Of a stretch of DNA of 64,000 nucleotides, positions 25,477 to 64,000 are shown piece after piece. The stretch spans positions 37,758,001 to 37,822,000 of the forward strand of contig CM097888.1 in assembly GCA_044892525.1 (NCBI GenBank). The letters are read 5' to 3'. The number at the start of each line of letters is the position of its first letter. The stretch's first letter is position 1. The position numbers were made by a program, and so were the translations under genes. The notes under the pieces are model-generated. The model saw only the letters and a list, made by a program, of their open reading frames with translations. It was not told where the DNA came from and did not search any database. The DNA comes from Schmidtea polychroa. Lineage: Eukaryota.

Positions 25477-27195
25477 TCATTTACTGTTTGTATGACTTCT
25501 TTCCACATTTTGGTTCGATTTATTAAAACTTGAAGAATTTGAAATGGTTTCCCTGATACTCGAAAGTTTGCCCCTCATCAGAGAATAAACACGTGCCGTA
25601 CAAACAAAACAAAGAGTCAACAAAAAACCTTGAAGACAATTTACCATCGAACCTAAATTTATCAAAATCTTGAGTTGTGTAAATATTGAGATAATTTGCA
25701 ATACATAACCAATGCCAAATACTGCCGTAAGTCTTATACAAAGCCACAAAGTTGAATTCGAGTCTCTCGTCTTTACCATTCTGCATTCTTTAGCAGTTTT
25801 GAATAGTTGATAAAACACAAATCCACATGTGATTAAATTCCACAATAATAACAAACAAACGGGAATGAAATACCATACCAACCCTCCAACCTCACTAGTA
25901 AACCAACAATGCTGTCCTCCATACCTTGGTCTAAGCGTTGAATTAGTCTTATCAAAATATTCAGTTACTACAGAAATTCCCACAACGGAACCAGAAACAC
26001 CAAATACACATATAAAATATATGCAAAATGTCTTCCAACCTTTATTCTTGTTAATGCTTGCTGACTTTGTGCCGAAGGTTTGTAACAGATCCAAGGCGTA
26101 AACAGCCATCCAAACGAAAGTACTCAAAGCAACAAAATGATGGAATATTGCCAAATACTTACACGAGGTTGATTTGACAATTTGAGTGTTGGTTACCAAT
26201 AAACTCATGAAATTGATCAACCAAAGACAAATACTCAAACAAACGGTTAAGTAGCCTCCGAAATTCCTAAAGACCTGATGAGTTAAATATAATATAACCA
26301 AAAAGAGTAAAGATATTAATGATACACAAGTGAAAATAAATGAGATGTGGTAAATAACTGTTTCTCCCATATCTGTCTCAAAGGTAGAATTTGTGTTATT
26401 TGAAACGTTTTTTCCATGATTGAGATTTATTTCTTTAGATTTTTCATTATTATCTTGTTTCTCCCATTTGTTAAAATCTAGTAAATAGCTAAAATGGGAA
26501 TATGGATCATTCCAAAGTTTCATTCTAAGAGAACAATGTTTGTTCCAACATCTACAACAGAAGATATTTTTATATTTTTGAAACCTGTAAACATAGGTTT
26601 TCTTTTCCCCATTTTCGCATTTGTCAATAACAATTTTATTCTGTATTAATTTAGTGTTTGTACAATTTTCAATTATATCTGCTTCACAACTTCTCTGTAA
26701 AGTTCTATTAAAATATGGAAAGATCTGACAGTGCTTTGGATTGTCAATTACTGCTTCATTAGCACTGGCATAGTCATAGATTTCTCTCGGATCGCAGTTG
26801 ACTTTCACTTGCAAATACGTAAAATGAAATTCTTCATTACATTTAGCACAGAATAGATTGCCATAGATAATCTTTATATTCGAAATCACTGGGATCCAGG
26901 ATTTGAGGGGATTTTTTGGATTGAATATATTTCTTTTGCATAAATCAGAGAGAGGATGATTGGGATTATTGCATTTATTAATTATCCACATAGCTGATGG
27001 GAATAACTTGTTGAATGGTTTGCATGACAAAACATTTCTAAGTAATCCTGGCTTACCGTGATCCTGATGGTCATAACAACAATCGCCATATAGATAACAT
27101 TGAGGATCTGAATGACATATTTGATCAATTTGTGAACCAGTGTAACTTGATCTAATTGTTGAGAGAAATATTATTAATATCAATAATAAAATCAT
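25477..27195 (-). CDS. Intronless SMB-like class-B GPCR, copy 4, ~572 aa
   Basis: First in-frame ATG is 27195 (track start 27204 is TTG). Carries CHSDPQCYLYGDCC and a 7TM near-identical to copies 5 and 6. Confidence 0.92.
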   Translation of the reverse strand: MILLLILIIFLSTIRSSYTGSQIDQICHSDPQCYLYGDCCYDHQDHGKPGLLRNVLSCKPFNKLFPSAMWIINKCNNPNHPLSDLCKRNIFNPKNPLKSWIPVISNIKIIYGNLFCAKCNEEFHFTYLQVKVNCDPREIYDYASANEAVIDNPKHCQIFPYFNRTLQRSCEADIIENCTNTKLIQNKIVIDKCENGEKKTYVYRFQKYKNIFCCRCWNKHCSLRMKLWNDPYSHFSYLLDFNKWEKQDNNEKSKEINLNHGKNVSNNTNSTFETDMGETVIYHISFIFTCVSLISLLFLVILYLTHQVFRNFGGYLTVCLSICLWLINFMSLLVTNTQIVKSTSCKYLAIFHHFVALSTFVWMAVYALDLLQTFGTKSASINKNKGWKTFCIYFICVFGVSGSVVGISVVTEYFDKTNSTLRPRYGGQHCWFTSEVGGLVWYFIPVCLLLLWNLITCGFVFYQLFKTAKECRMVKTRDSNSTLWLCIRLTAVFGIGYVLQIISIFTQLKILINLGSMVNCLQGFLLTLCFVCTARVYSLMRGKLSSIRETISNSSSFNKSNQNVERSHTNSK

Positions 27196-29269
27196 AATTA
27201 TCAATTCATTTAAAATAGTGAAAATTTAAATATTTATTTGTTTAAATTGACTGATTGTATTGTGAGGAGAATTAGGATTCAATCATATTTATAACAATAA
27301 TTTTATGAAATTAATGTCGTAATGAAATTTTGTTAATGATATTTTATTATATTTATCAAATAGGACAATCAACCGTTTTATTAGGAAAATAAAACTCGAA
27401 ATTGAATTGGGCTATTTAAACTCATCTTTTACTGTTCATTGCCAAATTTAACTTGTAATCTATTTTAAAGATAAATATAATTATTTAGAATAAATAGAAA
27501 ATAATAGTATCAGTTTAGATAGAAAGAATGAAAATAATGTAGTTTGGCAGATTATAATAAAAATCCAATATATTTATTTATTTCAACATCGTGTATAAAC
27601 ATTATAGAAATCAATATTCATGATGATTCGGGTGATCAAGTAATTACCAAAAGACTCGAAAATTCGATTGCTATTATATTTTGGTAAAATGGAGTAGTAA
27701 TTATGTTGGGTTATTAATTAATTCGTTGGTGTATAACTTCATGTATGACTTCTTTATATCAAGTAAAAGCAAGCCGTATACAATAAGTGTTTTTTTCAAA
27801 TTATATTTAAAATTTGTCAATACAATAATTTATTAATTAGATTTGCACTTTTCTTTGATATATAGTATTGATGGCAGGTAACCCAAAGGGCAACCGTCTT
27901 TTTACAAACTTGACTTGACTTCGCAAAAAACTTCCACTTTAACCTTTCTAAAACTTTTCATTCCCTTTATAGATCTCTCCTTTGAGTCAATCATTTTCCC
28001 CAATAAAATTATCAATTCTCTGGAAGTAACAAAATATAAACTAAATTCAATTATTTTCTTTTATTTTGCCTGAAAATCTTGGGAATTTTTTTTATTAATT
28101 ATATTAATTAATTTATATCAATTGAGAAAATTGGTTTGTATTTTTCAATTAATTTTGTCAATAAACCTCCCTTGGTTTGTAGTTATTATATTCGTATTTG
28201 TCTCATCCTTCGCGATTCGCTCATATCTGTTTTTTAAAAATATTAATTTTTTAATATTTGTAATTTTTAATAATTTTTTGCACTCCAATTTATTTTTGAA
28301 TTTTTTTAATTTTTTATTGTTTTTTGAGCAGTTCTTTGTGCAATTTAACCTTTTTACGAAACCTCAACAATTAGGACATTATATACAGTTTTATAAAATA
28401 AAATACTTTACACAACAAAAATGTACTACCTGATGTAATTCATATTTTATCAAAGGAAATTAATAAAGTGAACAAGAACAAACAAAATATTTAATACTTA
28501 AGAGACTTGAAACAAAATTATTAATAAAATTTCTCGAGGATATGGAATTATATTTTGAAAAACAACTTGAAAATCCCGTGTAAATCAGGCTTTTAGTAAT
28601 TCGTTACCTTTCTCTCTTTTCAAATTGTATATTCACTTTATGTTTGACAGCAAATGACAAATTTCGTTTAGTTCTTCTCTTTTGACAATAACAGTAGGGA
28701 GATGTGAGCTTGCTAGTTCATAATGAGTTCTCTGTCACCCCCTCCAAAAAACTGACCTCGTCAAAATCAAAACCTTTGTTGACCACTATCCTTAAGTTTC
28801 ATGAAAACTTATCTTCAAAACCACGTAAGCCAGCTAGTTTATTATGGCCTATTTAGCCCAATCCTCAAAATATATTTCTTTGGAGCTATTTAAAATTTTT
28901 AGTTTGATAATTTACTGACTTTATTGAGATCAAAACTATTTCAAGATCAAAACTCGTTTTCGATATCATGGTTGGATCACGGTTAAATGGCGATTCTAAT
29001 ATTTTTCCTATCTATCTCAATATAAGATGATGAAGTCTGCATATTCTAAACAAAAATAATATGTATATGTATGCTGTTTTAACGGGGTCGATGTGAGAGT
29101 ATGCAAAGACGGTATCAGAGAAGACAAATTGCATTGGAAAATGAGCGATCTAGCGAATTTGAGAATGGTTTATAGTTGTGAGGCCAAAACATGAGAAGCC
29201 ATTATGAAAATTTCAAATTTTCTTTGGTTTTTTGTAATTTCATTTCAAAGCTATTTGAATACACTTCCA

Positions 29270-35520: not shown

Positions 35521-37206
35521 TCATTTTTTTAACAGAAGATCCAATACATTCTGTTTATCATTTGAATGACTTCTTTCTGATTTCTGTGTGGATCTATTCG
35601 CACTTGATGACTTGGATATACTTTCCGTAATTATTGACAGTCTGTTCCTTAATTGAGAACGAGCGCGTTTTGTACAAACAAAACAAAGAGTCAACAAAAA
35701 ACCTTGAAGACAATTTACCATCGAACCTAAATTTATCAAAATCTCAAGTTTCGTAAATATTGAGATAATTTGCAATACATAACCAATGCCAAATACTGCC
35801 GTAAGTCTTACACAAAGGCACAAAGTTGAATTGGAGTTTCTCGTCTTTATCATTCTGCATTCTTTAGCAGTTTTGAATAGTTGATAAAACACAAATCCAC
35901 ATGTGATTAAATTCCACAATAATAACAAACAAACGGGAATGAAATACCATACTAACCCTCCAACCTCACTAGTAAACCAACAATGCTGTCCTCCATACCT
36001 TGGTCTAAACGTTGAATTAGTCTTATCAAAATATTCAGTTACTACAGAAATTCCCACAACGGAACCAGAAACACAAAATACACATATAAAATATATGCAA
36101 AATGTCTTCCAACCTTTATTCTTGTTAATGCTTGCTGACTTTGTGCCGAAGGTTTGTAACAGATCCAAGGCGTAAACAGCCATCCAAACGAAAGTACTCA
36201 AAGCAACAAAATGATGGAATATTGCCAAATACTTACACGAGGTTGATTTGACAATTTGAGTGTTGGTTACCAATAAACTCATGAAATTGATCAACCAAAG
36301 ACAAATACTCAAACAAACGGTTAAGTAGCCTCCGAAATTCCTAAACACTCGATTAGTTAAATATAATATAACCAAAAAGAGTAAAGATATTAATGATACA
36401 CAAGTGAAAATAAATGAGATGTGGTAAATAACTGTTTCTCCCATATCTTTCTCAAAGGTAGAATTTGATGTGTAATTATTGTAATTTAGGACAGAGAGTT
36501 CCTCTTCATTCTCTCCATCTTCATCCCACTTATCGTAATTGAATAAGTAACTAAATCCTAATGAGCCCCCTGAATAAAACCTTTTATTTGTCAAGGTAGC
36601 ATTTCTTTCAATGTTAGAACAATTTTTAATATCACAATTATCCAGAACTCTTCTATGATTTTTAAGATTATTTTCATTTGTTCTAATCATACAATTCCTT
36701 TGTAACCCTTTTTCAAAATATGGTAAAACTTTGCACAATTTTGAGATTTGTTTCATCACAGTTTTATTCTCAATTTTATCTTTATCAAACGGAAGAATTA
36801 AACCGCATGCAATTTTCACTTGCAAATACGTAAAATGAATTTCTTCATTACATTTAGCACAGAATAGATTGCCATAGATAATCTTTATATTCGAAATCAC
36901 TGGGATCCAGGATTTGAGATGATTTTTGGGATTAAATATATTTCTTTTGCATAAATCAGAGAGAGGATGATTGGGATTATTGCACTTATTAATTATCCAC
37001 ATAGCTGATGGGAATAACTTGTTGAATGGTTTGCATGACAAAACCTTTCTAAGTAATCCCGGCTTACCGTGATCCGGATGGCCATAACAACAATCGCCAT
37101 ATAGAGAACATTGAGGATCTGAATGACATATTTGATCAATTTGTGAACCAGAGTAACTTGATTTCATTGATGAAAATAAAATTATCCATATTGATAAAGT
37201 ATTCAT
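35521..37206 (-). CDS. Intronless SMB-like class-B GPCR, copy 5, 561 aa
   Basis: ATG start, signal peptide, CHSDPQCSLYGDCC and 7TM; lacks the second YxNxxCCxC module. Confidence 0.92.
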   Translation of the reverse strand: MNTLSIWIILFSSMKSSYSGSQIDQICHSDPQCSLYGDCCYGHPDHGKPGLLRKVLSCKPFNKLFPSAMWIINKCNNPNHPLSDLCKRNIFNPKNHLKSWIPVISNIKIIYGNLFCAKCNEEIHFTYLQVKIACGLILPFDKDKIENKTVMKQISKLCKVLPYFEKGLQRNCMIRTNENNLKNHRRVLDNCDIKNCSNIERNATLTNKRFYSGGSLGFSYLFNYDKWDEDGENEEELSVLNYNNYTSNSTFEKDMGETVIYHISFIFTCVSLISLLFLVILYLTNRVFRNFGGYLTVCLSICLWLINFMSLLVTNTQIVKSTSCKYLAIFHHFVALSTFVWMAVYALDLLQTFGTKSASINKNKGWKTFCIYFICVFCVSGSVVGISVVTEYFDKTNSTFRPRYGGQHCWFTSEVGGLVWYFIPVCLLLLWNLITCGFVFYQLFKTAKECRMIKTRNSNSTLCLCVRLTAVFGIGYVLQIISIFTKLEILINLGSMVNCLQGFLLTLCFVCTKRARSQLRNRLSIITESISKSSSANRSTQKSERSHSNDKQNVLDLLLKK

Positions 37207-37538
37207 TGATCGATTGTGAATTATTTGTGATCTGGGTTCAATTTATTTGTTTAAATTAGCAAGTTGTGTAATGAATTATTTGATAGGCTGATAAAGTTGT
37301 CACAGGATTTGTCTGTTACAGAAAATAGAAATTAAATATGATTTATAGAAATTTATTATGCAAACAGAATGAGATGTGGAACATTAATTAATCTTACTGA
37401 TATCGAAGAATAATAATCTGCGCCGAATTAATTTGATATCCGTTGCGTTTATCTTGAATTTAATTATTCCCTGTTCTCTCATATTACAAATATATTTAAA
37501 CAAAATAACAAAGTTTTGTACAATTACAGTGTATTTCT
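37207..37538. repeat. 5' flank of GPCR copy 5, near-identical to 49549-49880 (5' flank of copy 6)
   Basis: 332-bp colinear match with only a few substitutions. A second, more diverged block matches about 37560-37740 vs 50260-50435. Confidence 0.95.
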
Positions 37539-38399
37539 CTAAATATTATTTCTAAAAAATTTATTCTTTGGTTTTCTCAGATTCTTAGATTCTTATTCAT
37601 ATTTAAATTAGACTACGAAAAGACTTCGCATTGGAAGATCATTGGTCCTATTTGGACATTCACATTTTCAACAATATCAAATCTAAATTCATTGACTGCC
37701 TCGGTGCAGTGATTATTTAAATTGTTTATTAATTTGTATAATGACAACTTATAATGACAATCGGGTGTGCAAATAATGCAAAATTAGAAAATAAATATTA
37801 TTTAATAAGTGTTACATATGGTGGGTTACAGGTAATCCACATCTTACCCTTTCTTAGCCAATCCTGAGTTGCTTAAAAAGAAAATTTGAGTTTATTTTTG
37901 GTTATGACGAGACATTTTTAGATTTCCGTTTGAACTCTAACAGCAAACCTTTGTGTGTTCTTTTTGCTTATGTAAATTCAATGGTAGTTATTAGCTTGTC
38001 AACTATTAATGTTACTTGCATGGGTCAATTTTAATGATAATTCTATGAAATGTTTAGTGCTTATCCTGCTAAATCGAAATCAAGTTTAAATATGGACCAA
38101 TGTGTGAATTCTTGAAGCATTAGAATGTTGAAAATATGCACATGAAATTAATTAAGTTCATAACTATCTTTAAAAAGAACCCCCAATTATTGGACAGATG
38201 AAATATATTTCAAGATCATTTCAAGACAATTTTGCTATAACTAAATGAACTGTCGCCTCTTTCAAACTAAACGGATCGTTTGATAAAGATAACCATCATA
38301 ACTATGAAAGATGACTTTAATTATCATTTGTAAATATTTTGAATTATCAATTGTGACAATTACAATAAACCACACGAACTATGGTTAATCTCGTTTACC

Positions 38400-39370
38400 T
38401 AACGCACAGTCTTCCTACGGTCACTAATAGTGACTCACTATCAAGTATCATTTGGTTAATTGTGGAAATCCTAAAGGGGAAGATTAGTCGGGACTGTATA
38501 AATGTTTTATATGCATATATTTTCTGTGCAGGATGTAGGTCGGATTCGAAAGGTTTTGTTGCGTCTCTTATTGCCTTATTTAATATGTTGTCGATATTGT
38601 AAATCCCTTTTTCGTGTAAGTTACTGCCTAAATATCTATAAAGGTTATTCTCATCAACTATAGGTATTTTTCATTGTATATTGTTAGTATTTTGTTATTA
38701 TTTTTTTATTTAGTCTAAAGTATCCACATTTACTTGGGCAAAATACTAGTCCTGCTATTTCTGTATGCTTTATTATGTCGCTTAGCATGTTTTCTATGTC
38801 TTGTCTAGAATTTTATAGAAGTACAATGTTATCAGCGTAGGCAATAATACTGAAATTACATCCGTTAATTATAAATGGACGTTTGCTTAATATGTCTTTA
38901 ATTAAAAAATCAATTGTCAGTCAAAATATGGTCGGGACATGGGGCATACATTATTTATTTTTATGCTATCTGTTTTGTTTCCTTTTTTTCATTTTTTCCG
39001 TCGCATTCATTGTATATAGTTTGTATGAGTTCTAATGTGTTTTTGTGAATGCCTATTTTGTGTTATGTATCCTATAGTAATTTAATCTTACCAAATGCGT
39101 CAGTTAGACCTAGCTAAATGATATATATATCTATTTTTGTTCTGATGGCTCTTTCTTCTACTAGTGTTAATAATGTGTTGTGTTCAGAGCAGCCATCAGG
39201 TGTACATATTGCTTTCTGGTTGTTGCTAAGTAAATTTCCTAGTCTTATCCATTTGAGGAGTCTATTGTTTATAATGACGGAAAAAATATGTATGATGTGT
39301 ATAGCATTGCTAGTGGTTTCTATGAAGATATCTCATGGGTAATTTCTTCCTTACTGGGTTTAACGATAAG
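38400..39370 (-). mobile_element. Non-LTR retrotransposon RT relic of the RLE (R2/NeSL/Utopia-like) group
   Basis: Ordered minus-strand motifs KPLAML, QKA...DGCSEHN, LTDAFG, CPMS, IIAYADNIVL, GLVFCPSKC, YRYLG and LHPAQKI...FIQSRLIF, with stops and frameshifts. Confidence 0.8.
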
Positions 39371-40266
39371 TTTTGTTTTGTATAATTCTGTTATGTATTT
39401 ATGTTGTATTTGAGTTTGCTTCGTGTATTACTTCTTGCTTTTGTTTGATTTTTCTTTAAATTTGGGGTTATTACTTTGGTATTATGTGGATTCAATTAAT
39501 TATGTTTATTTGGTGTTTTAACGTGTTTCTAATTTAGTTGGACTTACTACTATGTTTGCGTGTTATGTTACTACGCATTTCGTCACGTTACTTATGCATG
39601 GGACTAGAGTAAGTTTTTGCCCAATACATATCATTTTGTAGAAGTTTAATAATATAAAATATCAAAATACCATGTTGTTGGACACACATTTACAAGTGAA
39701 AAAAATTATATATGGTTAAAATCTGTCAAGCAGATCATTTGAAAATTATTAAAAATTGAAGGCAATAGATAAAAGTTTTTAGTTCTATCAGTAGTAAAAA
39801 TAAAGAAATTGAAAAAAATATAAATTTTGCAATATTATATAAAGTGCAAGTTGACATTAATAAATTGGAGTGCGAAAGATTTCCTTTTAAACGAGTTTTA
39901 GATCGGTTGAATTTAAAGAAAAATCTCCCTTGTTCAATTAATATAATTGAATCACAAATGTAATAGTTGCTATAATATTAGTAATATTTCATCATGAAAC
40001 TGAGTAATGTAATTTAGTTATAAGATATTTTTAAAAAAAATTATGTATGACCTTAACTTGTTTAACTCAAGTAATTAAGTATATTAAAAATGCTACACAT
40101 TTCATTCGGAAATAATATCATTGTCACTTTAGCATTGGTTAAGAAGTAATCAATTTATTTTATCTGACTATTTTATTCTTGAAATATTTTGAATTTACTA
40201 ATGAAAATCTGTTAAATAATTAATAAATATTATAAATTGAAGTATTAAATCGCAGTTCTTATAATT

Positions 40267-43200
40267 ATGGTAAATTTATTGGATGAATCTCCTATAAATC
40301 AAGCAATTGATGCCGTTGTTAAACTTGCTAAAAATATTATAAATGATGAGAACTCCGAATCAAAAAGAAAAGTTGAAAGAGATTTTAAATCTTGGGAATC
40401 ATCAGATTCAAAAGAAAATGACTTGTTTAATGATAAAATATTCCGGTAAATTTATTTCATTTATTTTCAAAAGTACTTATAATTTTGACGGGTGAATAGT
40501 TCAAAATCTTTATCAAAAATTCTATTATTGGCATCTAATATAAATCACTGTATATTACTTGTGTCATTATTAATCAGTCATATAAAGCGGTAAATATTTT
40601 ATTATCTAAATATGATTGGATGTTATTGGAAGCGTGCATCTGTATTTAACGGTTTGCAAAATTTAACATTCACATAAAATTTTCGTCAAAACTGAAGTAT
40701 ATCCTGCAACCTATTTAAAATTAAATTAATCACCTTTAAAAATCGTATTTACATATTATACAAAATGCTTCACAATTAGAGCTGTGATTATTTAAATTAA
40801 ATTATATTCGGTTCGAAATCTAGAATATAAAATTCTAACTCATTAAAATTTATGATTTATATATTATAAAATATTAATGATAGAAAGTAAAATCGGTCAT
40901 TTTGACTGGTCTGGTAGTTCTAGTATTAAAAGACATTTTTAAAATGGTTTCTAAAATGAAAAATGTCAATATATATTGACTCACGCAAATGGTTTACACC
41001 AGAAACCACTCAGATACGTTTCCAATAATATAAGAAAAAAATTAATAATCTTACATCATAGAAACATACATACTTACTTTCACTCTAATATTCTCATTGA
41101 TAGTGCAATAAGATACGCCTTACACTATCGAAATCTAAAATGTTGTAGAAAAATAAATACTGCACACAACCACAACACATTCTACAAAACACATGCAAAC
41201 TCTATATATAGAAATGCGCCGCTGAGATACGTTTATAATAACTTTATTTTAGACAATTTTGAAAATATAAAAGATTGTTGAAAATGTTTTTAAATGTATT
41301 TTTAAAGAAACTACGTTAAATTATCATGAGAATGACGAAATATCATTGTAAGAATTATTTGAGTTAAAATTAAGTTAAATATTCATTAGAATTTCTGATT
41401 TGTTTTAGAAATGTTTTAGAAAAATACATCGTTGTTGATTGAACTATCAATTGATTTAATTATTTAATTATTATTAAAAATATATCTGACTTACATTATA
41501 TCAAAATAATTATAAAATAATTATAAAATAAATTTCATAAAATTCCTAAAAAACTTGAAAATTAATTAAAACTAATTTATAATACAAATGTTGACTAAAA
41601 GTAATATTTAAGAACTTGAATAATGATCTCATATATGGATCAAAATTCAAACCTTAAAATTAAACATCTGATATGAAAGCTATTTCTAATGACAAATGAA
41701 ATTCATTAAATTGGTGAGTCACCCATTGTAGACCAATTGGTTTACGCACCAACCACCACTATAGAAAATGTTATTATTATTTTATATTATAGAGTATTTT
41801 TTATCAAATGCAACACGATGTACTAAAAAATACATGTAAACTTTCCATAAGTAGAAATAGTTCACGGCAAAAAAACTTTTCAAAAATTGTATTATTTAGG
41901 AAAATGACAGATTAAAATTAAGAATTCATAGACACTGCTGAACTCAATTTAAAAAATATGAGTTGTTGGAAAATTAAAGAAAAAACAGTAAATTATGGAG
42001 CAAAATTTCATTTTAAATGGTTATTGTAATGTATTGTATTATTTTATTTGTCGGTTGTTTTTGTTATATGTAAATTACAATCTCGCACGTCGATATCGTT
42101 AATGAAACAGTTTACGTATGAATTGTGTATTCTCGATCAAACTTTCAATTAATCCTTATCAAATAACCGGAACATTCGATCAAACTTTCACTTAATCCTT
42201 TCAGAATAACTTTCAGAAAAAAAAGAAAATAATAAAATAATATAGTATAACGAACCAATTAATTATTACAACTTTTATTAAATATAAAATTAACTAATTA
42301 AACAACCTGGTTATTATTTCTTTTTCATGGTTTCGAAAGTTCGAAACTCAAATAAATTTCACGGCACACCATTGTGCCGCGGCACACAGTTTGGACAACA
42401 CTGCACTAATGTCTAATTAAAATTAAATATTTCTCAAAACAAATTATATATTTTTTAATGTAATGAATACTATTTAAAATTCTATTTTTTTTCTTACTGA
42501 AAATATCGCAACGATATAATTAACATGAATGGAAAATGGAACAGAATGGAAAAAATTTATTTTTTTTTCAAAAAAAATGTGTTTTGAAAATTAGATTTTA
42601 AAAAATAAATTTACAAAAACAAACTAAGTGGAAAATCACTTTTCGATTTTAGGACCCATTTAGAGTGGCGCCCCTATGCCGAATTTTGTGCTTCAAAATA
42701 TTTGTTTAATATCCCTTTAAATTCTAGCAATTTTTATCAAATTATAGTCTAAACAATAGTTACAAGCAAATTCGATGTATTTAAATTTTGTATTTAACCT
42801 TAATCTTAATATTTTTTTTATTTTTTAGTGCTTGTTACATTGTTCACCTCTACAGCAGAAGAATCGGTTGCTTTTATAATTTATTGAATTCTTTTAAATT
42901 AAATGGAAATATTAATAATTATATTCGAACAGTAAATTATTAAAAATTTTTGAATTTAAATTCTTATTTATTAATTTTGCTAGTGCGAAAAAGTGACCAG
43001 TATTGGTTGCGGTGCAGCTCCAGAAATTTTGTCCTATTTACATTACGTTCGTTTTAAATTGAAATGTAATACTTTGAACTTGAAATTTATTGGGTACGAT
43101 TCAATCATAAATTGGGATACCTACATTGATGTAATGAAACAAAATCTTGACAAACGAACTACTTTCGAATTCAAAGTTTGTTTCTATATTTTAATTTTCA

Positions 43201-45395
43201 TGTAGATGTATGATGCAATTGCAATGGGAAATTAAATTACTTGACCTATATTCTATAATAAATAGTTAAAGAGTAAATTATTAAAAATTTTTGAATTTAA
43301 ATTCTTTTTTTAATTATAAGTAAACGGCAATCGTTCTTTTCACGCTATATTTCGACAGTTTTCCTGTTATCATCAGGTAGGATATAATAACTATTTAAAT
43401 TAAGGATATTAAACAAATTTATTAATTTTATTAATTATATAAAAATTTTTTTTTATTTAATAAAAACATTTCATTCTTTTTAAAATTTATAATTAAAATA
43501 ATATATTATTTTTAAAATTTTAGCATTTATAATTTAATTTAATAACTTAAAATTTGTTTAATTAATTATTTAATTTGACAAACACCAATCAATACGTACA
43601 ATATTCAAAAAAATATTTAAAAACATTTAAAACACAGGTATTCACTGCATTATGTACATTAATTTTCGGATTCAATGACTTTATCAACAACGCCTCACAA
43701 ATTACACGTTCCCAATAATTATCGAAATTTTAAAATCAGACATACCTATTTTACTCTTACAGCACTTATTGTGCTCACTAATATTGGTCAAAATCTTCGG
43801 TCTTTAATGCTCTCAGGCTCGAACACAGAGATGACGGGAAGTAACTCCAAATTACACCCATTATATGTAAACTGATAGACGAGATCGGAACATAATTCGA
43901 TCGGAGTTTTAGACTTATTAATGAACATATTGCGTACTTTCCATGAAGTTGACACTATCCCATAGTTGAAATTTCCTAACTACTTTCTTATCTTATTATC
44001 TTATTCTTATTTTATATGCCTAGAGATTGATCATTAATAAATATTCATAGCCAGTGTTCTTATAAAACAAAGTCTCTTATTCATTCACATATTGTGTAAT
44101 ACAGGTCAATGTAGGAAAATTAATTATTACTAATAGATAAATGCTCAATTTCAGGATTCTGTATTCGATAAGTTCGAAGATGAGAATAAAGGAAGTGACT
44201 ACAAAAATTAGTAATTTTTTAGTCAAAATATTTTAAATTTTGATGGAAATGTAGCAATTTTTATAATAACTATTGAATAAAACCTAAGAAAATATAAAAT
44301 TTTATTTCAACCAAATGTTTGCATTTTCAGTCAAATAAAATGAATAAATTTAATTCACTTTTCACAAATTCTAAATAAATAACAAATTTCTGAAAATCTG
44401 ATTTTCAAATTCACACGGTCTTTTGAGCTCTTTAGTTCGTTAGTTATCTTAGGGAATTTTCTCTTTTATTCGGGTTTTTATTTTCACTACGTAAACTACA
44501 TTGTCCAATAAATTTGTACTTTTAATTCAACAATTTTGAAAAAATGACTTTCATTTTTCTATCTAATGATGATTAAATGGATTTATAAAATTTTAATTAA
44601 ATTATGTTTTTAAATCTGCACCTTCTAAGAATCCCTTTTCAATTTGAAAATATTTTTATACATTTATTTTTTTGTTTCCAATTTATTCCAGTTTATACTA
44701 TAAAATATGGTTAAAATTCAGTCTGTAATCCAATTAATTACTTTTTGATTAATATAAAGTGATGATTTCTTGGTAACAGCATTAATTAAATTTTAAACAA
44801 TTAAATGATAATTTTCGGCTATACGATATGAAATTGACAAGGATTATATATTATTTGCATCAAAAGGTTTAAATTATCATTTAATTGTTTATTACTTTTT
44901 GATTAATTCGATTAAATCTTTTGATTAAACTGAAAAACATTTGAAAAAAGCATTGCCAAAAATTTGTTACAAAGGGAAAATAAGTTTATAGTAATGAAAA
45001 TAAATTTATAAATTAAATGAATTTCTTTATGATTTTATGTATTTAATAACAAATTTTATTATGTAATAATGACAGAAATTCAAATTTAATAGCATTCTTA
45101 AATTTTATTAATCATTTAATTACAAAAATATTTTCATTTTCATTTGTAGAATGAAACTGTTAATATCACTACTCTTCGGAATATGAGAAAAGGAGGGGTT
45201 TGTTTAATGTCATTCTTTCACTTCAAAGATTTTCCTAACATTTGGAAACTTTTGAAAAGTCATTTTGAATTGGTTATAGTTCTTGATGTCAAAAGTGCAA
45301 ACTTTCGGTCCGTAATGCGGGGACGCGGTTATTCAATTATTAATTTTAAAGATGGGATTCAAGAGAAATATTTCTATTATTTCTATCGGTTTTAG
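40267..45395 (+). CDS. Predicted multi-exon class-I SAM-dependent methyltransferase-like gene (copy A; one junction unresolved, possibly a pseudogene)
   Basis: GT-AG, phase-compatible exons 40267-40445, 42829-42931 and 42984-43175, then probably about 43206-43264, 43321-43376 and 45150-45395. Motifs VTSIGCGAAPE (motif I), FIGYD...W (II) and MRKGGVCLM (VI-like). Confidence 0.65.
40997..41772 (-). mobile_element. Second, inverted copy of the TA-flanked TIR element at 14542-17350 (no Tigger; one end lost)
   Basis: Starts TA|CACCAGAAACCACTCAGATACG. Its reverse complement aligns to 14560-14903 joined to 16814-17350. Confidence 0.75.
42355..42403 (-). mobile_element. Solo terminus of a Buster/Charlie-type hAT element
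   Basis: Reverse complement CAGTGTTGTCCAAACTGTGTGCCGCGGCACAATGGTGTGCCG is a typical Buster end; no partner end was found. Confidence 0.5.
43435..43726 (-). repeat. Dispersed repeat, inverted homolog of about 29690-29975
   Basis: Shares GGATTCAATGACTTTATCAACAACGCCTCACAAAT, the spacer and the adjoining AT-rich tract. Confidence 0.85.
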
Positions 45396-45991
45396 TTAAT
45401 ATCTTTTATATAACTTATTCTTTTTAACATTCAAATTGAACTTCTCTACATTCAAATGAATAATAAACTGTAATGTGACTTTATATTGCAATTTGGATTT
45501 TAGTAGAATTTTTATTATAAATATAAAATTCAATTTTTTTAGAGAGCGTAATAAATCATTAAATTTAACATATTTCACTCTACATAGTGCCAGTGACTAC
45601 CCTGGAAATAAATAAACCTTAGTTTCACGTACCCCATCTGAAATTGTATTTAATTTTAAAATATAAAAATTTCCACATTTGCAAATAATAGTTTAGATCA
45701 ATGGTCTTCAAAAGTTCGGGTTTGCAATAACTGGTTTGACGGTAGTGTGTAATTACTAGGTAGAATTAATAAAAAAAATTGTTATATGTTTATCATGGTA
45801 GTGTAGATTTGGTGGCCACTTGCATCCCATATTTTGCCTTAATAGTTTTTACTTTTAAAGCCACCACTCACTGGCTTATCCTTCTGGTTTGGAAACCATA
45901 ATTATTAATTTTCCCTCTATTTTGTAATAAATTCATAATTGTGTCGAGAACATTTTTGTACCGGTAAACCAGATTTTGATTAATTTTTAAT

Positions 45992-47844: not shown

Positions 47845-49548
47845 TTATATTATTTCATTTTTTAACAGAAGATCCAATACATTCTGTTTATCATTTGGAT
47901 GGGTCTTCTCTGACTTCTGGGTGGGTCTATTCGCACTTGATGACTTGGATATACTTTCCGTAATTATTGACAGTCTGTTCCTTAATTGAGAACGAGCGCG
48001 TTTTGTACAAACAAAACAAAGAGTCAATAAAAATCCTTGAAGACAATTTAACATCGAACCTAAATTTATCAAAATCTTGAGTTGTGTAAATATTGAGATA
48101 ATTTGCAATACATAACCAATGCCAAATACTGCCGTAAGTCTTACACAAAGGCACAAAGTTGAATTCGAGTTTCTCGTCTTCACCATTCTGCATTCTTTGG
48201 CAGTTTTGAATAGTTGATAAAACACAAATCCACATGTGATTAAATTCCACAATAATAACAAACAAACGGGAATGAAATACCATACCAACCCTCCAACCTC
48301 ACTAGTAAACCAACAATGCTGTCCTCCATACCTTGGTCTAAGCGATGAATTAGTTTTATCAAAATATTCAGTTACTACAGAAATTCCCACAACGGAACCA
48401 GAAACACCAAATACACATATAAAATATATGCAAAATGTCTTCCAACCTTTATTCTTGTTAATGCTTGCTGACTTTGTGCCGAAGGTTTGTAACAGATCCA
48501 AGGCGTAAACAGCCATCCAAACGAAAGTACTCAGAGCAACAAAATGATGGAATATTGCCAAATACTTACACGAGGTTGATTTGACAATTTGAGTGTTGGT
48601 TACCAATAAACTCATGAAATTGATCAACCAAAGACAAATACTCAAACAAACGGTTAAGTAGCCTCCGAAATTCCTAAAGACCTGATGAGTTAAATATAAT
48701 ATAACCAAAAAGAGTAAAGATATTAATGATACACAAGTGAAAATAAATGAGATGTGGTATGTTATCGTTCCTGCCATATCTGTCTCAAAGGTAGAATTTG
48801 ATGTGTAATTATTGTAATTTAGGACAGAGGATTCCTCTTCATTCTCTCCATCTTCTTCCCACTCCTTATAATTTAGTAAGTAGCCAAATTCATTAAAGCT
48901 AAATGGAATTTTTATCACAGGTAAGGATGCATTTCTTTCAATATCAGAACAATTTTTAATATCACAATTATAAATATCTTGAGGATGATCGTCATTTGGG
49001 GAGGAGATGTTTGAAAAATCATTTGTTCTAATCATACAATTCCTTTGTAACCCTTTTTCAAAATATGGTAAAACTTTATACAATTTTGAGATTTGTTTCA
49101 TCACAGTTTTATTCTCAATTTTATCTTTATCAAACGGAAGAATTAAATCTTCAATTTTCACTTGCAAATACGTAAAATGAATTTCTTCATTACATTTAGC
49201 ACAGAATAGATTCCCATAGATAATCTTTATATTCGAAATCACTGGGATCCAGGATTTGAGATGATTTTTGGGATTGAATATATTTCTTTTGCATAAATCA
49301 GAGAGAGGATGATTGGGATTATTGCATTTATTAATTATCCACATAGCTGATGGGAATAACTTGTTGAATGGTTTGCATGACAAAACATTTCTAAGTAATC
49401 CCGGCTTACCGTGATCCGGATGGCCATAACAACAATCGCCATATAGAGAACATTGAGGATCTGAATGACATATTTGATCAATTTGTAAACCAGAGTAACT
49501 TGATTTCATTGATGAAAATAAAATTATCCATATTGATAAAGTATTCAT
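47845..49548 (-). CDS. Intronless SMB-like class-B GPCR, copy 6, 567 aa
   Basis: ATG start, signal peptide and 7TM; closest to copy 5. Confidence 0.92.
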   Translation of the reverse strand: MNTLSIWIILFSSMKSSYSGLQIDQICHSDPQCSLYGDCCYGHPDHGKPGLLRNVLSCKPFNKLFPSAMWIINKCNNPNHPLSDLCKRNIFNPKNHLKSWIPVISNIKIIYGNLFCAKCNEEIHFTYLQVKIEDLILPFDKDKIENKTVMKQISKLYKVLPYFEKGLQRNCMIRTNDFSNISSPNDDHPQDIYNCDIKNCSDIERNASLPVIKIPFSFNEFGYLLNYKEWEEDGENEEESSVLNYNNYTSNSTFETDMAGTITYHISFIFTCVSLISLLFLVILYLTHQVFRNFGGYLTVCLSICLWLINFMSLLVTNTQIVKSTSCKYLAIFHHFVALSTFVWMAVYALDLLQTFGTKSASINKNKGWKTFCIYFICVFGVSGSVVGISVVTEYFDKTNSSLRPRYGGQHCWFTSEVGGLVWYFIPVCLLLLWNLITCGFVFYQLFKTAKECRMVKTRNSNSTLCLCVRLTAVFGIGYVLQIISIFTQLKILINLGSMLNCLQGFLLTLCFVCTKRARSQLRNRLSIITESISKSSSANRPTQKSEKTHPNDKQNVLDLLLKNEII

Positions 49549-53417: not shown

Positions 53418-55315
53418 ATGAACATTTTATTATTCGGTCCAACAGTTACGGATATACATCCAGCAATAAATGCAGTTCTAAACGCCGCAATGGAAATAAA
53501 GTATCGTGCAAATTCGTATACTTTATCTAGAATAAAAAGATTGTTCAATAAATGGAAAAAAGATTTTGCAAAGAAAAACGTACTTTTTCAAAATTCGGAA
53601 TTTAGGTAAATTTTACCAATTTAAAAACATTCTATCGGTCTCTCAGGTCAGTAGAACTGTCGCTAAGGACAGCACTATGAGAGTTTTCTGTTTTATTAAG
53701 GGGATCCACTCATATTATTATAGCAGATAGTGATATGGTCAGTGACGTAACCTCAAATTCTGGGCCCCTATGATTTTCAAAATGACCCTCCTTGCAGCCA
53801 ATGACAATCTGATAGACAATAATTTTATGTTTTTAATTCATTTTGAATTTCCGGACTCAAATATTTGATGCTGTGTTTATGTTTATTTAAACGTTCACTC
53901 ATTATTGGATCAAATTCTGCTAGGATCTCAGCTTCAGATAAAAGAAAAGGCATTGCCAAAAATTTGTGAGTACCAAATAACATCGATATATTACTGATTT
54001 ATAGTCTTCAAGGTCTCTTTTTAATAAATTATAAACCTCATCGATGTGTTCATTATGTCCTCTAAATGACTATCCATTGCAAGCTAAACTTTCTTAATTT
54101 CTTTCTCATTTGATTCATTTAAAGCAGTGTACATATCTTTGGCCATTTTTGTGATGTGTAGCTTGTGTTGAACCGGTAATTGTGACTTCATCCAAAAGTG
54201 TAGTATTTGATCACACGCTCTCAGTTACAATAACTTTTCTTATCCGGTGAAAGAAAGCAAAGATATGCATCATCTAACGTTCAAAAGAAAGTGCACAATT
54301 TTATTTTGCACGGATGTCATATTAACCAGACGATATTTCCGCTGTGGTGAGAATTGATTTCACCGGCGTAGATTTAGCCGCAATAATTTCGAATGTAATC
54401 GAATATCACAGATTTCGTTATGTGACGATAAAGACCTTTTCCAATAAATTGCATTCAGTTTATGAATAAAATTATTTTTTAAAATGCTTATAACCAATGA
54501 TATTATTAATTATAATATTATTAATAGTAAATAGATATTTAACTGGTATGATGCAAGTTTCACAAAAATAGAACCGAATTGCGACAATGGTACTAATTTC
54601 TTTAATGTTATGGATCCTTGAAGGACCAATAAATGCTTTTTATTTCTCGGAAATTTTGCAGATAGTATTTGGTTATAACGAAACTTTAGGGGGTATAACA
54701 TCAGTTTCATGACTATAACAACTTATTTTTCCCGGTACACAATTCTTTCTAAGATAAAGCAACAACTAATATTCCTATTTACAAATTAACTTCACAAATA
54801 ATATAAAAATAACAAAGTGACTGTAAACTTTTTATACAAACTTATCTTTTTTATTTTTGACTAAAAATTTCACACTACATTTAAATTAAAAAAAAATGAT
54901 TTAATCCATTTAACTTGAATTCATTTCATTAAAATTCTTCACATTCAGGACTAACAAATAATCTTACTCAAACTCTTCAATTGACTATATTTAATAATTG
55001 AGATAATTGGAAGTCTTAACACTATCAGTGCCAAAGAAAATAATGTATTTTCAATATAAACTTGACAGACTGTGGATTTAAGTGAAAATTTCAAATATTT
55101 TTCGTGTTCATAACTTATGAACTTTAGATGCGGCTCTCTTTCTTTGCTGTCATAATCCTAACGGTACAAAGAGAAAATTTCCAAAAATTGTTGTGGTGCG
55201 AGCGGCAAAGCACTGGCAGTCAAAAATGACTGACATGGCACTGAGTGTGTTACCATTGTATATAGAATTCCGCCCATTACCTGATAAACTGAATGATAAA
55301 TTAAATTTTTTTGAA
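53418..55315 (+). pseudogene. Diverged paralog (copy B) of the methyltransferase-like gene, probably decayed
   Basis: Exon 53418-53605 aligns without gaps to copy A exon 1 (18/51 identical aa) and has the same phase-2 intron in the final Arg codon. AG/GT-bounded open exon 55128-55315 (KIVVVRAAKHW...IEF) resembles copy A exon 3. Motif I region appears decayed (CEYQITSIYY*). Confidence 0.55.
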
Positions 55316-59650: not shown

Positions 59651-60048
59651 ATATTTTTTAGATTTGACCATATTTTGACCATATATAGTTTCATATTTTT
59701 AGATTTTGACCATATCTATCTGAAATCTAAAATTAAGCTTTTTCAATTTAAAAAATTTTAATTATAAACTAATTTTAACAAAAAAAATCGTAATTATTTA
59801 ATTTTATTCAAGTTTACTATTTTAATTATAATTAATTAATTTTAATCAATTTTAACTATCTTTAATTACTTTTAATTATCTTGGTTCAGTGGAAGGATGA
59901 TAATTGTTTCGAAAAAAACTAAATAATTCTTATTTTGCAATTTCAAACGTAAAAAATTATAAAAGGTAATAAATTTAAAACACAGCTCAATAAGGAGAAA
60001 AAAACAAACGTTAAAAACTATAAATTTTTTAAAAATAAATAAATTGAA

Positions 60049-60918
60049 AATACTTTTTTCAAATTGGATTGTGTCATGGGATTCTAAATTAAGAAGTATT
60101 GGAAGAAATATTATTTTATTAGTAGATAATTGTTCTTCCCATCCTCCGTTAGGTCAATCTTTAACAAATATTGATCTAATTTTTATGCCTCCAAATACCA
60201 CAAGTAAGTTACAGCCTTTAGATGTCGGGGTTATCAATGCTTTTAAGCAGTATTATAAAAAAGGAATTGTTACAAAAATGATTCATTTTTATGATTCTTA
60301 TCCAGAAGAAAAATTTAAAGTAAGTATTCTCGATGCAATTAGTATGGCTAAAACGGCTTGGTCAAAAGTTAGCTGTAATACTATAAAAAATTGTTTTAGG
60401 CATGCTGGTTTCGGCGAAGTGGTTGAAGGAATGGCAATAAATGAAAAATTTTCATCTGATATAGAGGAATATTTTGAAAAGCAACACTCGTTTACTGATT
60501 TTGTTAATGCTGAAGAAAATATAGTAACAGAAAATGTAACTGAACAGGAAGTAGAATTAAATTTGTCGCTATCTGATACGTCAGATAACAATCAATGTGT
60601 TGAGCTTCCCAACATTCATAAAGCATTTGAGTGCATGCAACAAGTAGTTCTTTTTTATTCAAATCAGGATAAAACTGGCCATTTACAAGAAAGTTTAATA
60701 GCAATTGAATCAGATTTGGAGAAGATTTTACTCAAGAAAAAAACCAGGCAACAGAAAATAACTGAGTTTATTTTCAAAAAATAAATGTGTTAGTTAGTAA
60801 AATTTTTTGAATATTTTTAAAATTATCCTTATTAAAAAGTATCGGTTATAGAGAAGTATCGGTTATAGAGAACATTTTTTTAAGTCCCAAAAATGTTCTC
60901 TTTAAGCGGTATCTACTG
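60049..60918 (+). mobile_element. 5'-truncated Tigger copy (about 99% identical to 15946-16813)
   Basis: Same transposase C-terminus and intact right TIR ending ATCTACTG|TA; about 10 differences seen by eye. Confidence 0.95.
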
Positions 60919-62105: not shown

Positions 62106-62371
62106 TGTAAGATGATATAATAATTTACAACGAATTACTTACATAACCAGGTCACTAGACCTTGATATCTATTGAATGATGCGGGAATGCTTGTATAACT
62201 AAATTAAGTAAGTATGTTTGTCTTCTGTGTCAACAGTATCACTTAAACTAATAATTCTCCCTTTTGTAGATTACGCAATTCAATGTACTATAAATAGTAT
62301 AACGATTGTGTGTTCCGTTTAGATTTTTGAAGTGAATAAAGATTTCTGTGAAACTATGTCTTCTTCTAACA
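62106..62371 (+). mobile_element. 5' LTR (266 bp) of a Ty3/gypsy retrotransposon
   Basis: TGTAAGATGA...TCTTCTAACA termini (8/10 inverted match), TATAAATA at 62289, AATAAA at 62335, and a PBS immediately downstream. Confidence 0.85.
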
Positions 62372-63444
62372 TGGCGACCACGCCAGGACTCCAGAACTAT
62401 ATCAAGCCACCTAATCAATTGCTGCCAAATGGTGATTTAGAAATTTTTATTTTGGAATTGAAGAGATTTTTCGAAGTCACGCAACAACCGCAAGAAACTC
62501 AAGAAATTGTTACCAAGGCCTTTCTGTCGGTAGAGTTGATCCAGAAATATGAAGAAGTACAGAGCGATTATTCAGGCTATGAAGAAAGATTAAGAAAAGC
62601 GTTCGAGCCAAGGAAAAATCTAGCCATGGATCTAGACGCAGCTTTAAGATATCGAAAAGGAAATGACTCGTGCACCGAATTTTTCAATAAAGTGGAAAAG
62701 CTCGTCGACAATGTTCTTCGACACAAATTAACAAAACCGGCATTAATGTTATTTTTAATGCAGAATGCAATGGAAGATATGGAAACAAAAAAAGAATTGA
62801 AATTAAGAGAAGTTAAATCAGTAGATAAGGCCAAGGAAGTGATATCAAGAATAGAAGAAATTCAAAAAGAGCTTTCAAGTGAACAATCATTAGCATCTCT
62901 ACATGAAAATAAATCATATGCGGAGACAGTCAAAAGTCCGAGAAAAACTCAGTTGTACCAACAGAATAAGACGCCAATATTTTATAACTCTAGAACCAAT
63001 GAGGCCATGAACTTCAATATGCCAAATAAAAGTGACTGGAAAAACGAGACCAGGCGATTTAAACTGCAGAGATGTTGGGCGTGTGGAGAGCAAGGACATA
63101 TTCGAGCAGAATGCCCAAACGTAAAATGCTCTCAATGTTCCAAAAATGGTCATTTCAAGTATCAATGTTGGGACATCAGAAGAAATTCAGTTAAAACAGA
63201 AGCATATTACAACAAAAGAAATTATGATAGAAATCAAAAACAATTTGGATCCAGAGGACAATTTCAAAGCAGAAACCAATCTTCAGACAGAGGACCACAT
63301 CGAAGACAATGCAATGCGATATACGACTACGAATACGAGGAAAGAGAGCTGATTCAACAGGATGATATGCAAAAAGATTGCGAACAGCTAAAAGGGGAGG
63401 CTCCAGTTTCAAGGGAGTTGCTAGGAGCCATAAATTTGGTTTAA
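62356..63444 (+). CDS. gag: Gag with two CCHC zinc knuckles
   Basis: CWACGEQGHIRAEC and CSQCSKNGHFKYQC; in-frame ATGs at 62356 and 62371. Confidence 0.9.
   Translation: MSSSNMATTPGLQNYIKPPNQLLPNGDLEIFILELKRFFEVTQQPQETQEIVTKAFLSVELIQKYEEVQSDYSGYEERLRKAFEPRKNLAMDLDAALRYRKGNDSCTEFFNKVEKLVDNVLRHKLTKPALMLFLMQNAMEDMETKKELKLREVKSVDKAKEVISRIEEIQKELSSEQSLASLHENKSYAETVKSPRKTQLYQQNKTPIFYNSRTNEAMNFNMPNKSDWKNETRRFKLQRCWACGEQGHIRAECPNVKCSQCSKNGHFKYQCWDIRRNSVKTEAYYNKRNYDRNQKQFGSRGQFQSRNQSSDRGPHRRQCNAIYDYEYEERELIQQDDMQKDCEQLKGEAPVSRELLGAINLV
62372..62389 (+). promoter_or_regulatory. Primer binding site, tRNA-Arg type
   Basis: TGGCGACCACGCCAGGAC is complementary to a tRNA 3' end GUCCUGGCGUGGUCGCCA, resembling metazoan tRNA-Arg. 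Confidence 0.75.
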
Positions 63445-64000
63445 GTAAGTATATTGTTGACACAGAATGTTTGAATTTGAATGCTTGTGATTTCAAGATT
63501 TCCGTAATGAATGAATTTAAAGATGATTTAAAAATTAATGATGTAATTATGAATGATTGTGAATTTTTTGACTTTGAAAATTATTTTGAATATAGTTTTT
63601 ATGAAATTAATAACAAAATTGATAAGATTATGAGTATCGATATAATTAATAATAAAGTTAATGAAAATAAAGAAAGACCTTTTGCACCTAAATTCGTTTA
63701 CGAAAGAAAGAATGGCAGACCTAGTGTAGGTATTTGGCTGGAAAATAAAATAAAAGTTGATTGTCTTTTGGATACCGGGGCTAGAATAAACGTGATTAGC
63801 GAAGATGTTGTTAGTAAATTAAAGATGCGTGATAAAATAGGGGAATCCAATATTATGGTTACATGTGCAAACGAGAGCACACTTAAGGAACACACATAGG
63901 AACAATATTACTAAAAGTGAGAATTTCGGGATTAGAATTGGTAATAAGATTCTTTGTGGCAAATAAGATTAACCCGAGCGTAATTGCAGGCGTAGAAATG
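63378..64000 (+). CDS. pol: Pol N-terminus (aspartic protease), -1 frame to gag, frameshifted at about 63895, runs off the window
   Basis: CLLDTGARINVIS active site. After the TAG at 63897 the protease continues in another frame (GTILLKVRISG...FFV...VIAGVEM). Confidence 0.85.

Follow-up and report, generated by a model that had tools for sequence, protein, structure and literature searches.

The window analysed here, a stretch of 64,000 nucleotides (nt) of the Schmidtea polychroa genome (G000:C4:37758001-37822000), carries on its forward strand, at positions 40267-45395, a transcribed and probably functional gene of four exons. It is very likely that this is a real expressed gene whose product has a class I methyltransferase fold. 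In the explanation that accounts best for the data as a whole, the transcribed gene would probably encode a class I methyltransferase dependent on S-adenosylmethionine (SAM), with RNA as its most likely substrate. The kind of protein is in itself ordinary; its interest lies in the family to which it belongs, which has no database model and is seen only in flatworms and cnidarians.

Transcription was assessed with contigs from four public runs (X1, X2, X3 and X5) mapped to 40200-45500. X5 is a DNA run, and X1-X3 come from two studies (X1 from one, X2 and X3 from the other), their run type being only guessed in the record. Contigs of 686-700 nt in X1, X2 and X3 are without introns and show the junctions 40444/5>42828/9 and 42931>42984, and the junction 43175>45150 is found, direct and in frame, in contigs from X2 (record 7) and X3 (record 9). 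In contrast to records 1, 7 and 9 of X1-X3, the X5 DNA contigs (records 14, 19 and 21) cross the exon/intron borders uninterrupted. Thus, the intron-less contigs of X1-X3 are complementary DNA (cDNA), and the splicing that the original prediction had proposed from the letters of the sequence is in part seen in transcripts.

The pieces of open reading frame (ORF) quoted in that prediction are present in the sequence, and four of them are true exons, joined across introns with GT..AG ends. The coding sequence of 720 nt is open throughout and encodes 239 amino acids (aa) instead of the roughly 280 expected, and the three introns are in phases 2, 0 and 0. On the plus strand, the 5' untranslated region covers at least 40200-40266, as record 1 of X1 spans 40200-40444 from its position 85 and has 84 further letters upstream. 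Exon 1 (40267-40445) encodes residues 1-59 plus 2 nt, is supported by the ORF and by the junction in X1, X2 and X3, ends in a phase-2 donor (CG-GTAAAT) and corresponds to the start of the N-terminal helical region. It is followed by intron 1 (40446-42828, 2383 nt), which the cDNA-like contigs lack and record 14 of X5 contains. Exon 2 (42829-42931, residues 60-94) carries the helix typical of the family, F-R-A-x-Y...L-[YF]-x-x-R, and is defined by the junctions and by alignment to the Macrostomum and cnidarian homologues described below. Intron 2 (42932-42983) has only 52 nt and is in phase 0, according to contig junctions and sequence.

The secondary structure of the remaining exons was assigned by alignment to the structural model of a Nematostella homologue (P0009). 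Exon 3 (42984-43175, residues 95-158) would thus comprise strand 1, motif I (G102-C-G-A-A-P-E108), strand 2 up to D133, W138 and strand 3 (T-F-E-F-K). Intron 3 (43176-45149, 1974 nt, phase 0) is removed in record 7 of X2 and record 9 of X3. Exon 4 (45150-45395, residues 159-239 and the TAG codon) would hold strand 4 (G-V-C-L-M-S-F, 174-180), the helix of W190, strand 5 (E-L-V-I-V-L-D, 198-204) and strands 6 and 7, the last of which forms the C-terminus of the protein. A possible polyadenylation signal, AATAAA, lies 67 nt past the stop codon (45462-45467, plus strand; sequence only).

The gene had also been thought to contain a frameshift at the junction 43176-43264 and an additional exon at 43321-43376, and neither is found in the transcripts, in which position 43175 is joined to 45150 in frame. 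The extra exon is skipped by the transcript contigs, is not required by the paralogues or by the family alignment, and from about 43334 sits in a repeat with a summed depth of about 1e6 in the DNA run. A 7-nt micro-exon (43266-43272), which would restore the frame together with the extra exon, was also considered and is without support in the transcript contigs. The splice-site look-alikes that delimit the false exon are due to a local copy of intron 2 within intron 3, since 43273-43320 is identical to 42932-42983 at 39 of 48 positions; an exact 34-nt core of intron 2 has just two copies in the 781-Mb genome, and this gene contains both. This copy may be the remnant of a duplicated segment of intron 2 and exon 3 that was later overwritten by the repeat. 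High-copy repeats lie inside the introns at about 40908-41792, 43334-44093 and 44625-44978, with summed depths of about 1e5-2e6 in the DNA run, and such intronic repeats can mimic a conserved 'motif IV' exon. Some of these interspersed repeats also occur in the cDNA-like runs.

Relatives of the protein were sought with a profile built from the last exon of seven paralogues, in an exhaustive search of 1.84 billion protein representatives, which returned nine proteins. Two of them (P0001 and P0002, transcript-derived and of planarian type) have the domain fused to Cys/His-rich repeats, and two from Macrostomum lignano (P0005 and P0006, 1094-1217 aa) have it on the N-terminal side of RS/RD-rich, low-complexity tails of about 900 aa. 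P0009 is the stand-alone Nematostella vectensis protein LOC116603031, of 263 aa, P0004 comes from a Logan assembly, and what is left are three short fragments or pieces of repeat junk. Another 25 proteins, cnidarian-type and about 250-300 aa long, were found in a second search; one of them is from the coral Montipora capricornis (P0032). No database copy of the window protein itself came up in two profile searches, which gave cnidarian proteins only, or nothing.

Judged by alignment, the homology of the window protein to the cnidarian and Macrostomum proteins is solid. The cnidarian proteins (P0009 and P0032) and the Macrostomum BOX15_Mlig009940 (P0006/P0036) are homologous to it over the whole length, with 21-27% identity and profile E values of 1e-14 to 1e-16. 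The alignment with the family runs from the N-terminal helix F-R-A-x-Y...R to the C-terminus, and the junction of exons 3 and 4 is gap-free. A hidden Markov model (HMM) made from cnidarian proteins only recognises the spliced window protein over residues 54-236 (57.6 bits, E 2.7e-14 at Z=1e6), and a pairwise blastp with the Macrostomum domain gives E 1.9e-21. The genes differ in structure, as those of Nematostella and Macrostomum have a single exon and the planarian-type genes have three introns. No function has been described for the cnidarian or Macrostomum homologues, and a literature search on the Nematostella locus name was empty.

The fold was derived from AlphaFold2 models of two homologues together with the family alignment. 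The Nematostella P0009 was modelled with a predicted local distance difference test (pLDDT) score of 86.2 and a predicted template modelling (pTM) score of 0.84, and the Macrostomum domain (P0006:60-310) with 82.9 and 0.81, respectively. In both, four to five helices at the N-terminus precede the order b1-aA-b2-aB-b3-a-b4-aD-b5-aE-b6-b7, with a b6-b7 hairpin. By alignment to these models, the window protein is predicted to be an N-terminal helical bundle (about residues 1-95) followed by a compact seven-strand class I methyltransferase core (about residues 97-239). A Foldseek search against the PDB gave 500 or more matches at E<=0.001. Methyltransferases make up nearly all of the 50 listed, the best being METTL17 from a human mitoribosome assembly intermediate (8csp_7, E 2e-7). 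At the top, the structural matches are all SAM-dependent Rossmann enzymes, with probability 1.00 and Z scores up to 16. The spliced, stand-alone gene with a class I Rossmann methyltransferase fold that had been proposed is therefore borne out by the two homologue models, their structural matches and the homology of the window protein to them. The structural part of this stands for the homologues, whose models match methyltransferases; the joined protein itself was placed on the fold by alignment only.

Among these enzymes, both models match best the Rsm22/METTL17 proteins (PF09243), with which the family shares a helical bundle packed on the seven-strand core. Rsm22 and METTL17 are methyltransferase-like factors for the assembly of the small subunit of the mitochondrial ribosome. 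A second aligner, VIA-align, which is independent of Foldseek, was run with both models and the chain identities of the matches were checked. For the P0009 and the Macrostomum model, respectively, it gave Z scores of 16.1 and 15.4 with Trypanosoma brucei mt-SAF1 (RSM22, 6sg9_F1), 14.7 and 15.0 with human METTL17 (8csp_7), and 13.4 and 13.9 with yeast Rsm22 (8d8j_0). These alignments cover 210-231 residues, N-terminal helices included, at root-mean-square deviations of 3.2-5.0 A, as opposed to 145-190 residues for generic methyltransferases, whose Z scores do not exceed 13.0 in the P0009 search. A shape search of the Atlas retrieved Rsm22 families with TM (template modelling) scores of 0.65-0.67, and matches in the Atlas and AFDB also included 'rRNA methyltransferase', BMT2/Bmt6-like, RsmG and uncharacterised protist and fungal proteins. 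Among the AFDB neighbours from protists and fungi are B7G181 and A0A2Z6QHK4.

Nevertheless, by sequence the family is distinct from Rsm22/METTL17. PF09243 matches neither the window exons nor the homologues at E<=10, and a scan of the same genome at E<=0.01 misses the window locus and finds a single match, at C1:204.72 Mb. This is the canonical METTL17/Rsm22 orthologue (L026/L027, G000:C1:204718939-204726140, minus strand), which scores above the PF09243 cut-off and matches human METTL17 with E 1.7e-20. An hhalign comparison of the family with the exons of this METTL17 is colinear and not significant (E 0.02-0.03). The window protein has 239 aa as opposed to 398-456 aa in Rsm22/METTL17, and lacks the C-terminal extension, which in METTL17 carries the Fe-S-binding (iron-sulphur) region. 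The cnidarian homologues, like the window protein, have their C-terminus no more than a few residues from strand 7. Moreover, by inspection of the sequence, the N-terminus of the window protein is acidic and not presequence-like, unlike that of the mitochondrial Rsm22/METTL17.

Other class I methyltransferases, such as RsmG/GidB, the 16S rRNA m7G methylases Sgm/RmtB/ArmA, JHAMT and histamine N-methyltransferase, have the same b1-b7 core, the Gly-rich loop and the acidic end of strand 2. Foldseek aligns them to the family with probability 1.00 and E of 1e-5 to 1e-7, but the identity is only 10-17% and there is no HMM match. A local likeness to the FtsJ/RrmJ 2'-O-ribose methyltransferases (PF01728) is seen at the L-x-P-G-G/strand region of exon 4 and at the G-A-A-P of motif I; the match to exon 4 (E 0.0075) has 16.6 bits against a cut-off of 24.1, the full-length homologues have no match, and FtsJ is not among the top structural matches.

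The residues invariant between cnidarians and flatworms fall at S-x-G-C-G-P-G and G-x-D, within a family-invariant signature composed of S-x-G-C-G-P-G, G-x-D-x-x-x-G-W, M-S-Y, W and K. Together with the fold, the conservation of the SAM motifs, and of the family from cnidarians to flatworms, argues for a SAM-dependent methyltransferase. In the window protein, motif I and the Asp of motif II are present, as had been proposed from the sequence. Motif I reads G102-C-G104-A-A-P-E where the family has G-C-G-P-G, so that two glycines are kept and the third is Ala, and D133, in I-G-Y-D at the end of strand 2, where an acidic residue makes contact with the hydroxyls of the ribose in class I methyltransferases, corresponds to D140 of P0009 and is invariant in the alignment of cnidarian and flatworm proteins. 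Besides G102-x-G104 and D133, the protein keeps W138, the F-E-F of strand 3 (F156-equivalent), M178-S179, W190 and D204. From these residues, SAM binding by the window copy is plausible, although not assured. If the protein is an enzyme, SAM would be bound at the Gly-rich loop after strand 1 (G102-x-G104) and by D133, and the substrate that receives the methyl group would be held by the conserved M-S-[YF] and Trp residues together with the N-terminal helices. The protein would act in the cytosol or the nucleus. Overall, we consider it rather probable that the window protein binds SAM and methylates something.

Several observations weigh against the favoured explanation and must be taken into account. 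Five of the 16 invariant residues are replaced in the window copy: P>A and G>A in motif I, G>N before W138, Y>F and K>H. Strand 4 opens with Gly, where the cnidarian proteins have an acidic residue (D-V-I-L-M-S-Y). Searches of NCBIfam and of PDB sequences gave no match, and Pfam, searched up to E 10 with the window exons and the complete homologues, gave only sub-threshold matches to FtsJ (exon 4) and PUB (exon 1). Since there is no sequence-library match even at E 1-10, the methyltransferase assignment depends on the modelled structures of homologues with 21-25% identity to the window protein. In the P0009 search, Rsm22/METTL17 lead the generic methyltransferases by no more than 1-3 Z units, and in the Macrostomum search histamine N-methyltransferase (Z 14.0) outranks yeast Rsm22. 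As for transcription, the RNA nature of X1-X3 is deduced from the absence of introns, and the contigs give neither strand nor expression level.

The replaced residues could mean that the window copy is a pseudoenzyme or a decaying tandem duplicate, which has kept the fold and lost methylation, serving as a SAM sensor or binding scaffold or drifting to loss; the ancestral activity would then reside in less altered paralogues, for instance the one at L019. The L019 paralogue has two of the invariant residues changed as opposed to five in the window copy, whose motif I reads G-C-G-A-A and not G-C-G-P-G and whose strand 4 starts with Gly and not Asp. In addition, the nearest structural kin, Rsm22 and METTL17, are assembly factors on pre-ribosomes in solved structures, and intron 3 is full of repeats and holds the leftover copy of intron 2. 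However, an intact ORF, canonical splice sites throughout and transcription in three runs speak against this. G-x-G, D133, W138, the F156-equivalent, M-S and W190 are all kept, and the Asp of strand 4 varies across the family, being missing in several planarian paralogues and present in Macrostomum. We regard loss of activity as unlikely, though not negligible, and favour an active SAM-dependent methyltransferase.

The substrate of such an enzyme may be RNA, because the architecture is nearest to that of the rRNA-associated Rsm22/METTL17 and because relatives carry appendages of a nucleic-acid type. By this analogy, RNA is a reasonable candidate, to which we give somewhat less than an even chance. 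An active methyltransferase with a small molecule or a protein as substrate is a little less probable and remains rather doubtful. It would agree with the Z scores of the matches next in rank, methyltransferases that act on natural products, hormones and amines, namely 13.0 for JHAMT and for MmcR and 12.4 and 14.0 for histamine N-methyltransferase, nearly equal to those of Rsm22/METTL17, with the presence of BpumL, ChlM and DhpI among the Foldseek matches, and with a short, stand-alone protein without an RNA-binding domain recognisable by Pfam. It fits less well with the N-terminal helices, which only Rsm22/METTL17 align (210-231 residues versus 145-190), and with the recurrence of RsmG and 16S rRNA methylases among the structural matches. 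Moreover, relatives are fused to RS/RD-rich tails in Macrostomum, or to Cys/His repeats shared with a superfamily 1 (SF1) helicase protein, and such tails and Cys/His-rich repeats are typical of nucleic-acid-associated proteins.

The fusion to Cys/His repeats is also found in this genome, in one of the paralogues of the gene. Exons 3 and 4 have counterparts at six or more other loci, giving at least seven loci of the family, three of which lie in tandem among genes for secretin-type G protein-coupled receptors (GPCRs). The tandem is formed by the window gene and the copies at L018 and L019, directly downstream of the window; another paralogue lies at C4:57.97 Mb (L022), two copies at C1:268.45 and 268.46 Mb (L023 and L024), and one at C4:27.63 Mb (L020/L021), whose last exon stays open into an extended Cys/His-rich frame. 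Identity to the window protein is 46% over 236 aa for the L019 copy, which was confirmed to have the same four exons and phases. In all copies the boundary between exons 3 and 4 is the same, exon 3 ending in ...T-F-x-F-[KQ] and the last exon starting with N/A, and none of the paralogues examined has a separate extra exon.

A tblastn search with the whole protein found no second copy of the gene in the window. In a looser search, exon 1 of the L018 copy emerged at 53419-53605 (plus strand), with an ATG and a phase-2 GTAAAT donor; it continues at L018:2861-3217 and L018:5100-5351. Exons 1 and 2 of this copy are about 13 kb apart, with a pogo remnant and ORFs of a long terminal repeat (LTR) retroelement between them.

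In the long paralogue, the last methyltransferase exon stands in one frame of 745 aa with C-G-H-rich Cys/His repeats and a helical C-terminus (L020:1737-3971, corresponding to G000:C4:27626737-27628971, minus strand), and an upstream exon is found at L021:7248-7400, also on the minus strand. The Cys/His-rich region has no match in Pfam, the Atlas, the PDB or NCBIfam, and it shows a relationship (E 1e-13) with the C-terminal part of P0037, which has helicase domains of the UPF1/IGHMBP2 type (AAA_11/AAA_12). 'NF-X1-type zinc fingers' is a tentative label for this region, as there is no library match and the link to the helicase-bearing P0037 alone is established. The architecture may be reminiscent of ZNFX1. 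A more far-reaching possibility is a new family of Rsm22/METTL17-like RNA methyltransferases, confined to cnidarians and flatworms and multiplied in planarian-type genomes, with one lineage of copies fused to the Cys/His module of an SF1 (ZNFX1-like) helicase, and with a role in RNA surveillance or small RNAs and not in ribosome assembly. This more specific proposal is speculative and, in our view, improbable as it stands.

A bacterial source had been suggested for the gene on account of its motif I. In its complete form, this alternative is a horizontal transfer from bacteria of a gene of about 280 aa that needs both the additional exon and a frameshift near 43176-43264, and we consider it extremely improbable. 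The motif G-C-G-x-x-P-E is superficially like the G-A-A-P-G of FtsJ-type proteins, to which the weak match of E 0.0075 was found, one relative is in a record titled 'MAG: bacterium' (metagenome-assembled genome), and introns are absent from the genes of Nematostella and Macrostomum. However, the transcript contigs leave the extra exon out and keep the frame, in agreement with the exon 3/4 boundary shared by the paralogues and the gap-free alignment, and the gene has three spliceosomal introns, a host-like GC content of 27% and at least seven paralogues.

The taxonomic distribution speaks in the same sense. The exhaustive HMM search of 1.84e9 representatives returned no bacterial record among the relatives: where an organism is named it is a flatworm or a cnidarian, and several have none stated. 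A scan with the motif-I peptide of one genome for each of 185,579 prokaryote species gave one confirmed relative, on contig_303 of the GTDB record 'MAG: bacterium' (L028). In 4.6 kb of gene-poor DNA with 36-43% GC (about 39%), this contig has a single notable ORF (253 aa), whose product is 94.5% identical to P0020, which groups with coral sequences. Most likely, to judge from its sequence, the contig is DNA of a eukaryotic host wrongly binned into a bacterial MAG. The single-exon relatives are no argument for a bacterial source: given the single-exon genes of Nematostella and Macrostomum, the planarian introns are probably gains in the triclad lineage that preceded the duplication of the paralogues, or else there were independent losses elsewhere. 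A bacterial origin is thus not supported, with no bacterial kin in the protein search, no NCBIfam match and a lone MAG match that is likely mis-binned, and this lead is not worth pursuing.

The gene adds to the known methyltransferases a transcribed family with this fold that Pfam and NCBIfam miss, patchily distributed in Cnidaria and Platyhelminthes and expanded in this flatworm lineage. The family resembles Rsm22/METTL17 yet differs from the METTL17 of the same genome, and one paralogue is fused to zinc-finger-like repeats associated with a helicase. Owing to this likeness and to the helicase-linked fusion, a role in RNA modification is testable.

The window as a whole has 27% GC and five N gaps. 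The gene lies within an array of six paralogous, intron-less GPCR-type ORFs, all 561-595 aa long and Cys-rich in their N-terminal region, at 8989-10776, 12306-14033, 25477-27204, 35521-37206 and 47845-49548 on the minus strand and at 20082-21767 on the plus strand. All three ORFs of the array that were scanned (about 560-595 aa) match 7tm_2 (PF00002, secretin/adhesion type), and one of the three has a weak somatomedin-B-like N-terminus. The ORFs at 25477, 35521 and 47845 are, judged by eye, closely alike, and a unit composed of a GPCR gene on the minus strand and a methyltransferase gene on the plus strand is present twice, at 35521-45395 and from 47845 onwards. Mobile elements are represented by an intact hAT-like ORF of 760 aa (2102-4384, minus strand), by an intact pogo/Tc5-type transposase with CENP-B_N, HTH_Tnp_Tc5 and DDE_1 domains (15202-16680, plus strand) and a second, truncated copy of this type (60044-60784, plus strand), and by an LTR-retroelement with a zinc-knuckle gag and an aspartyl protease (62332-63899, plus strand), which extends into L018.

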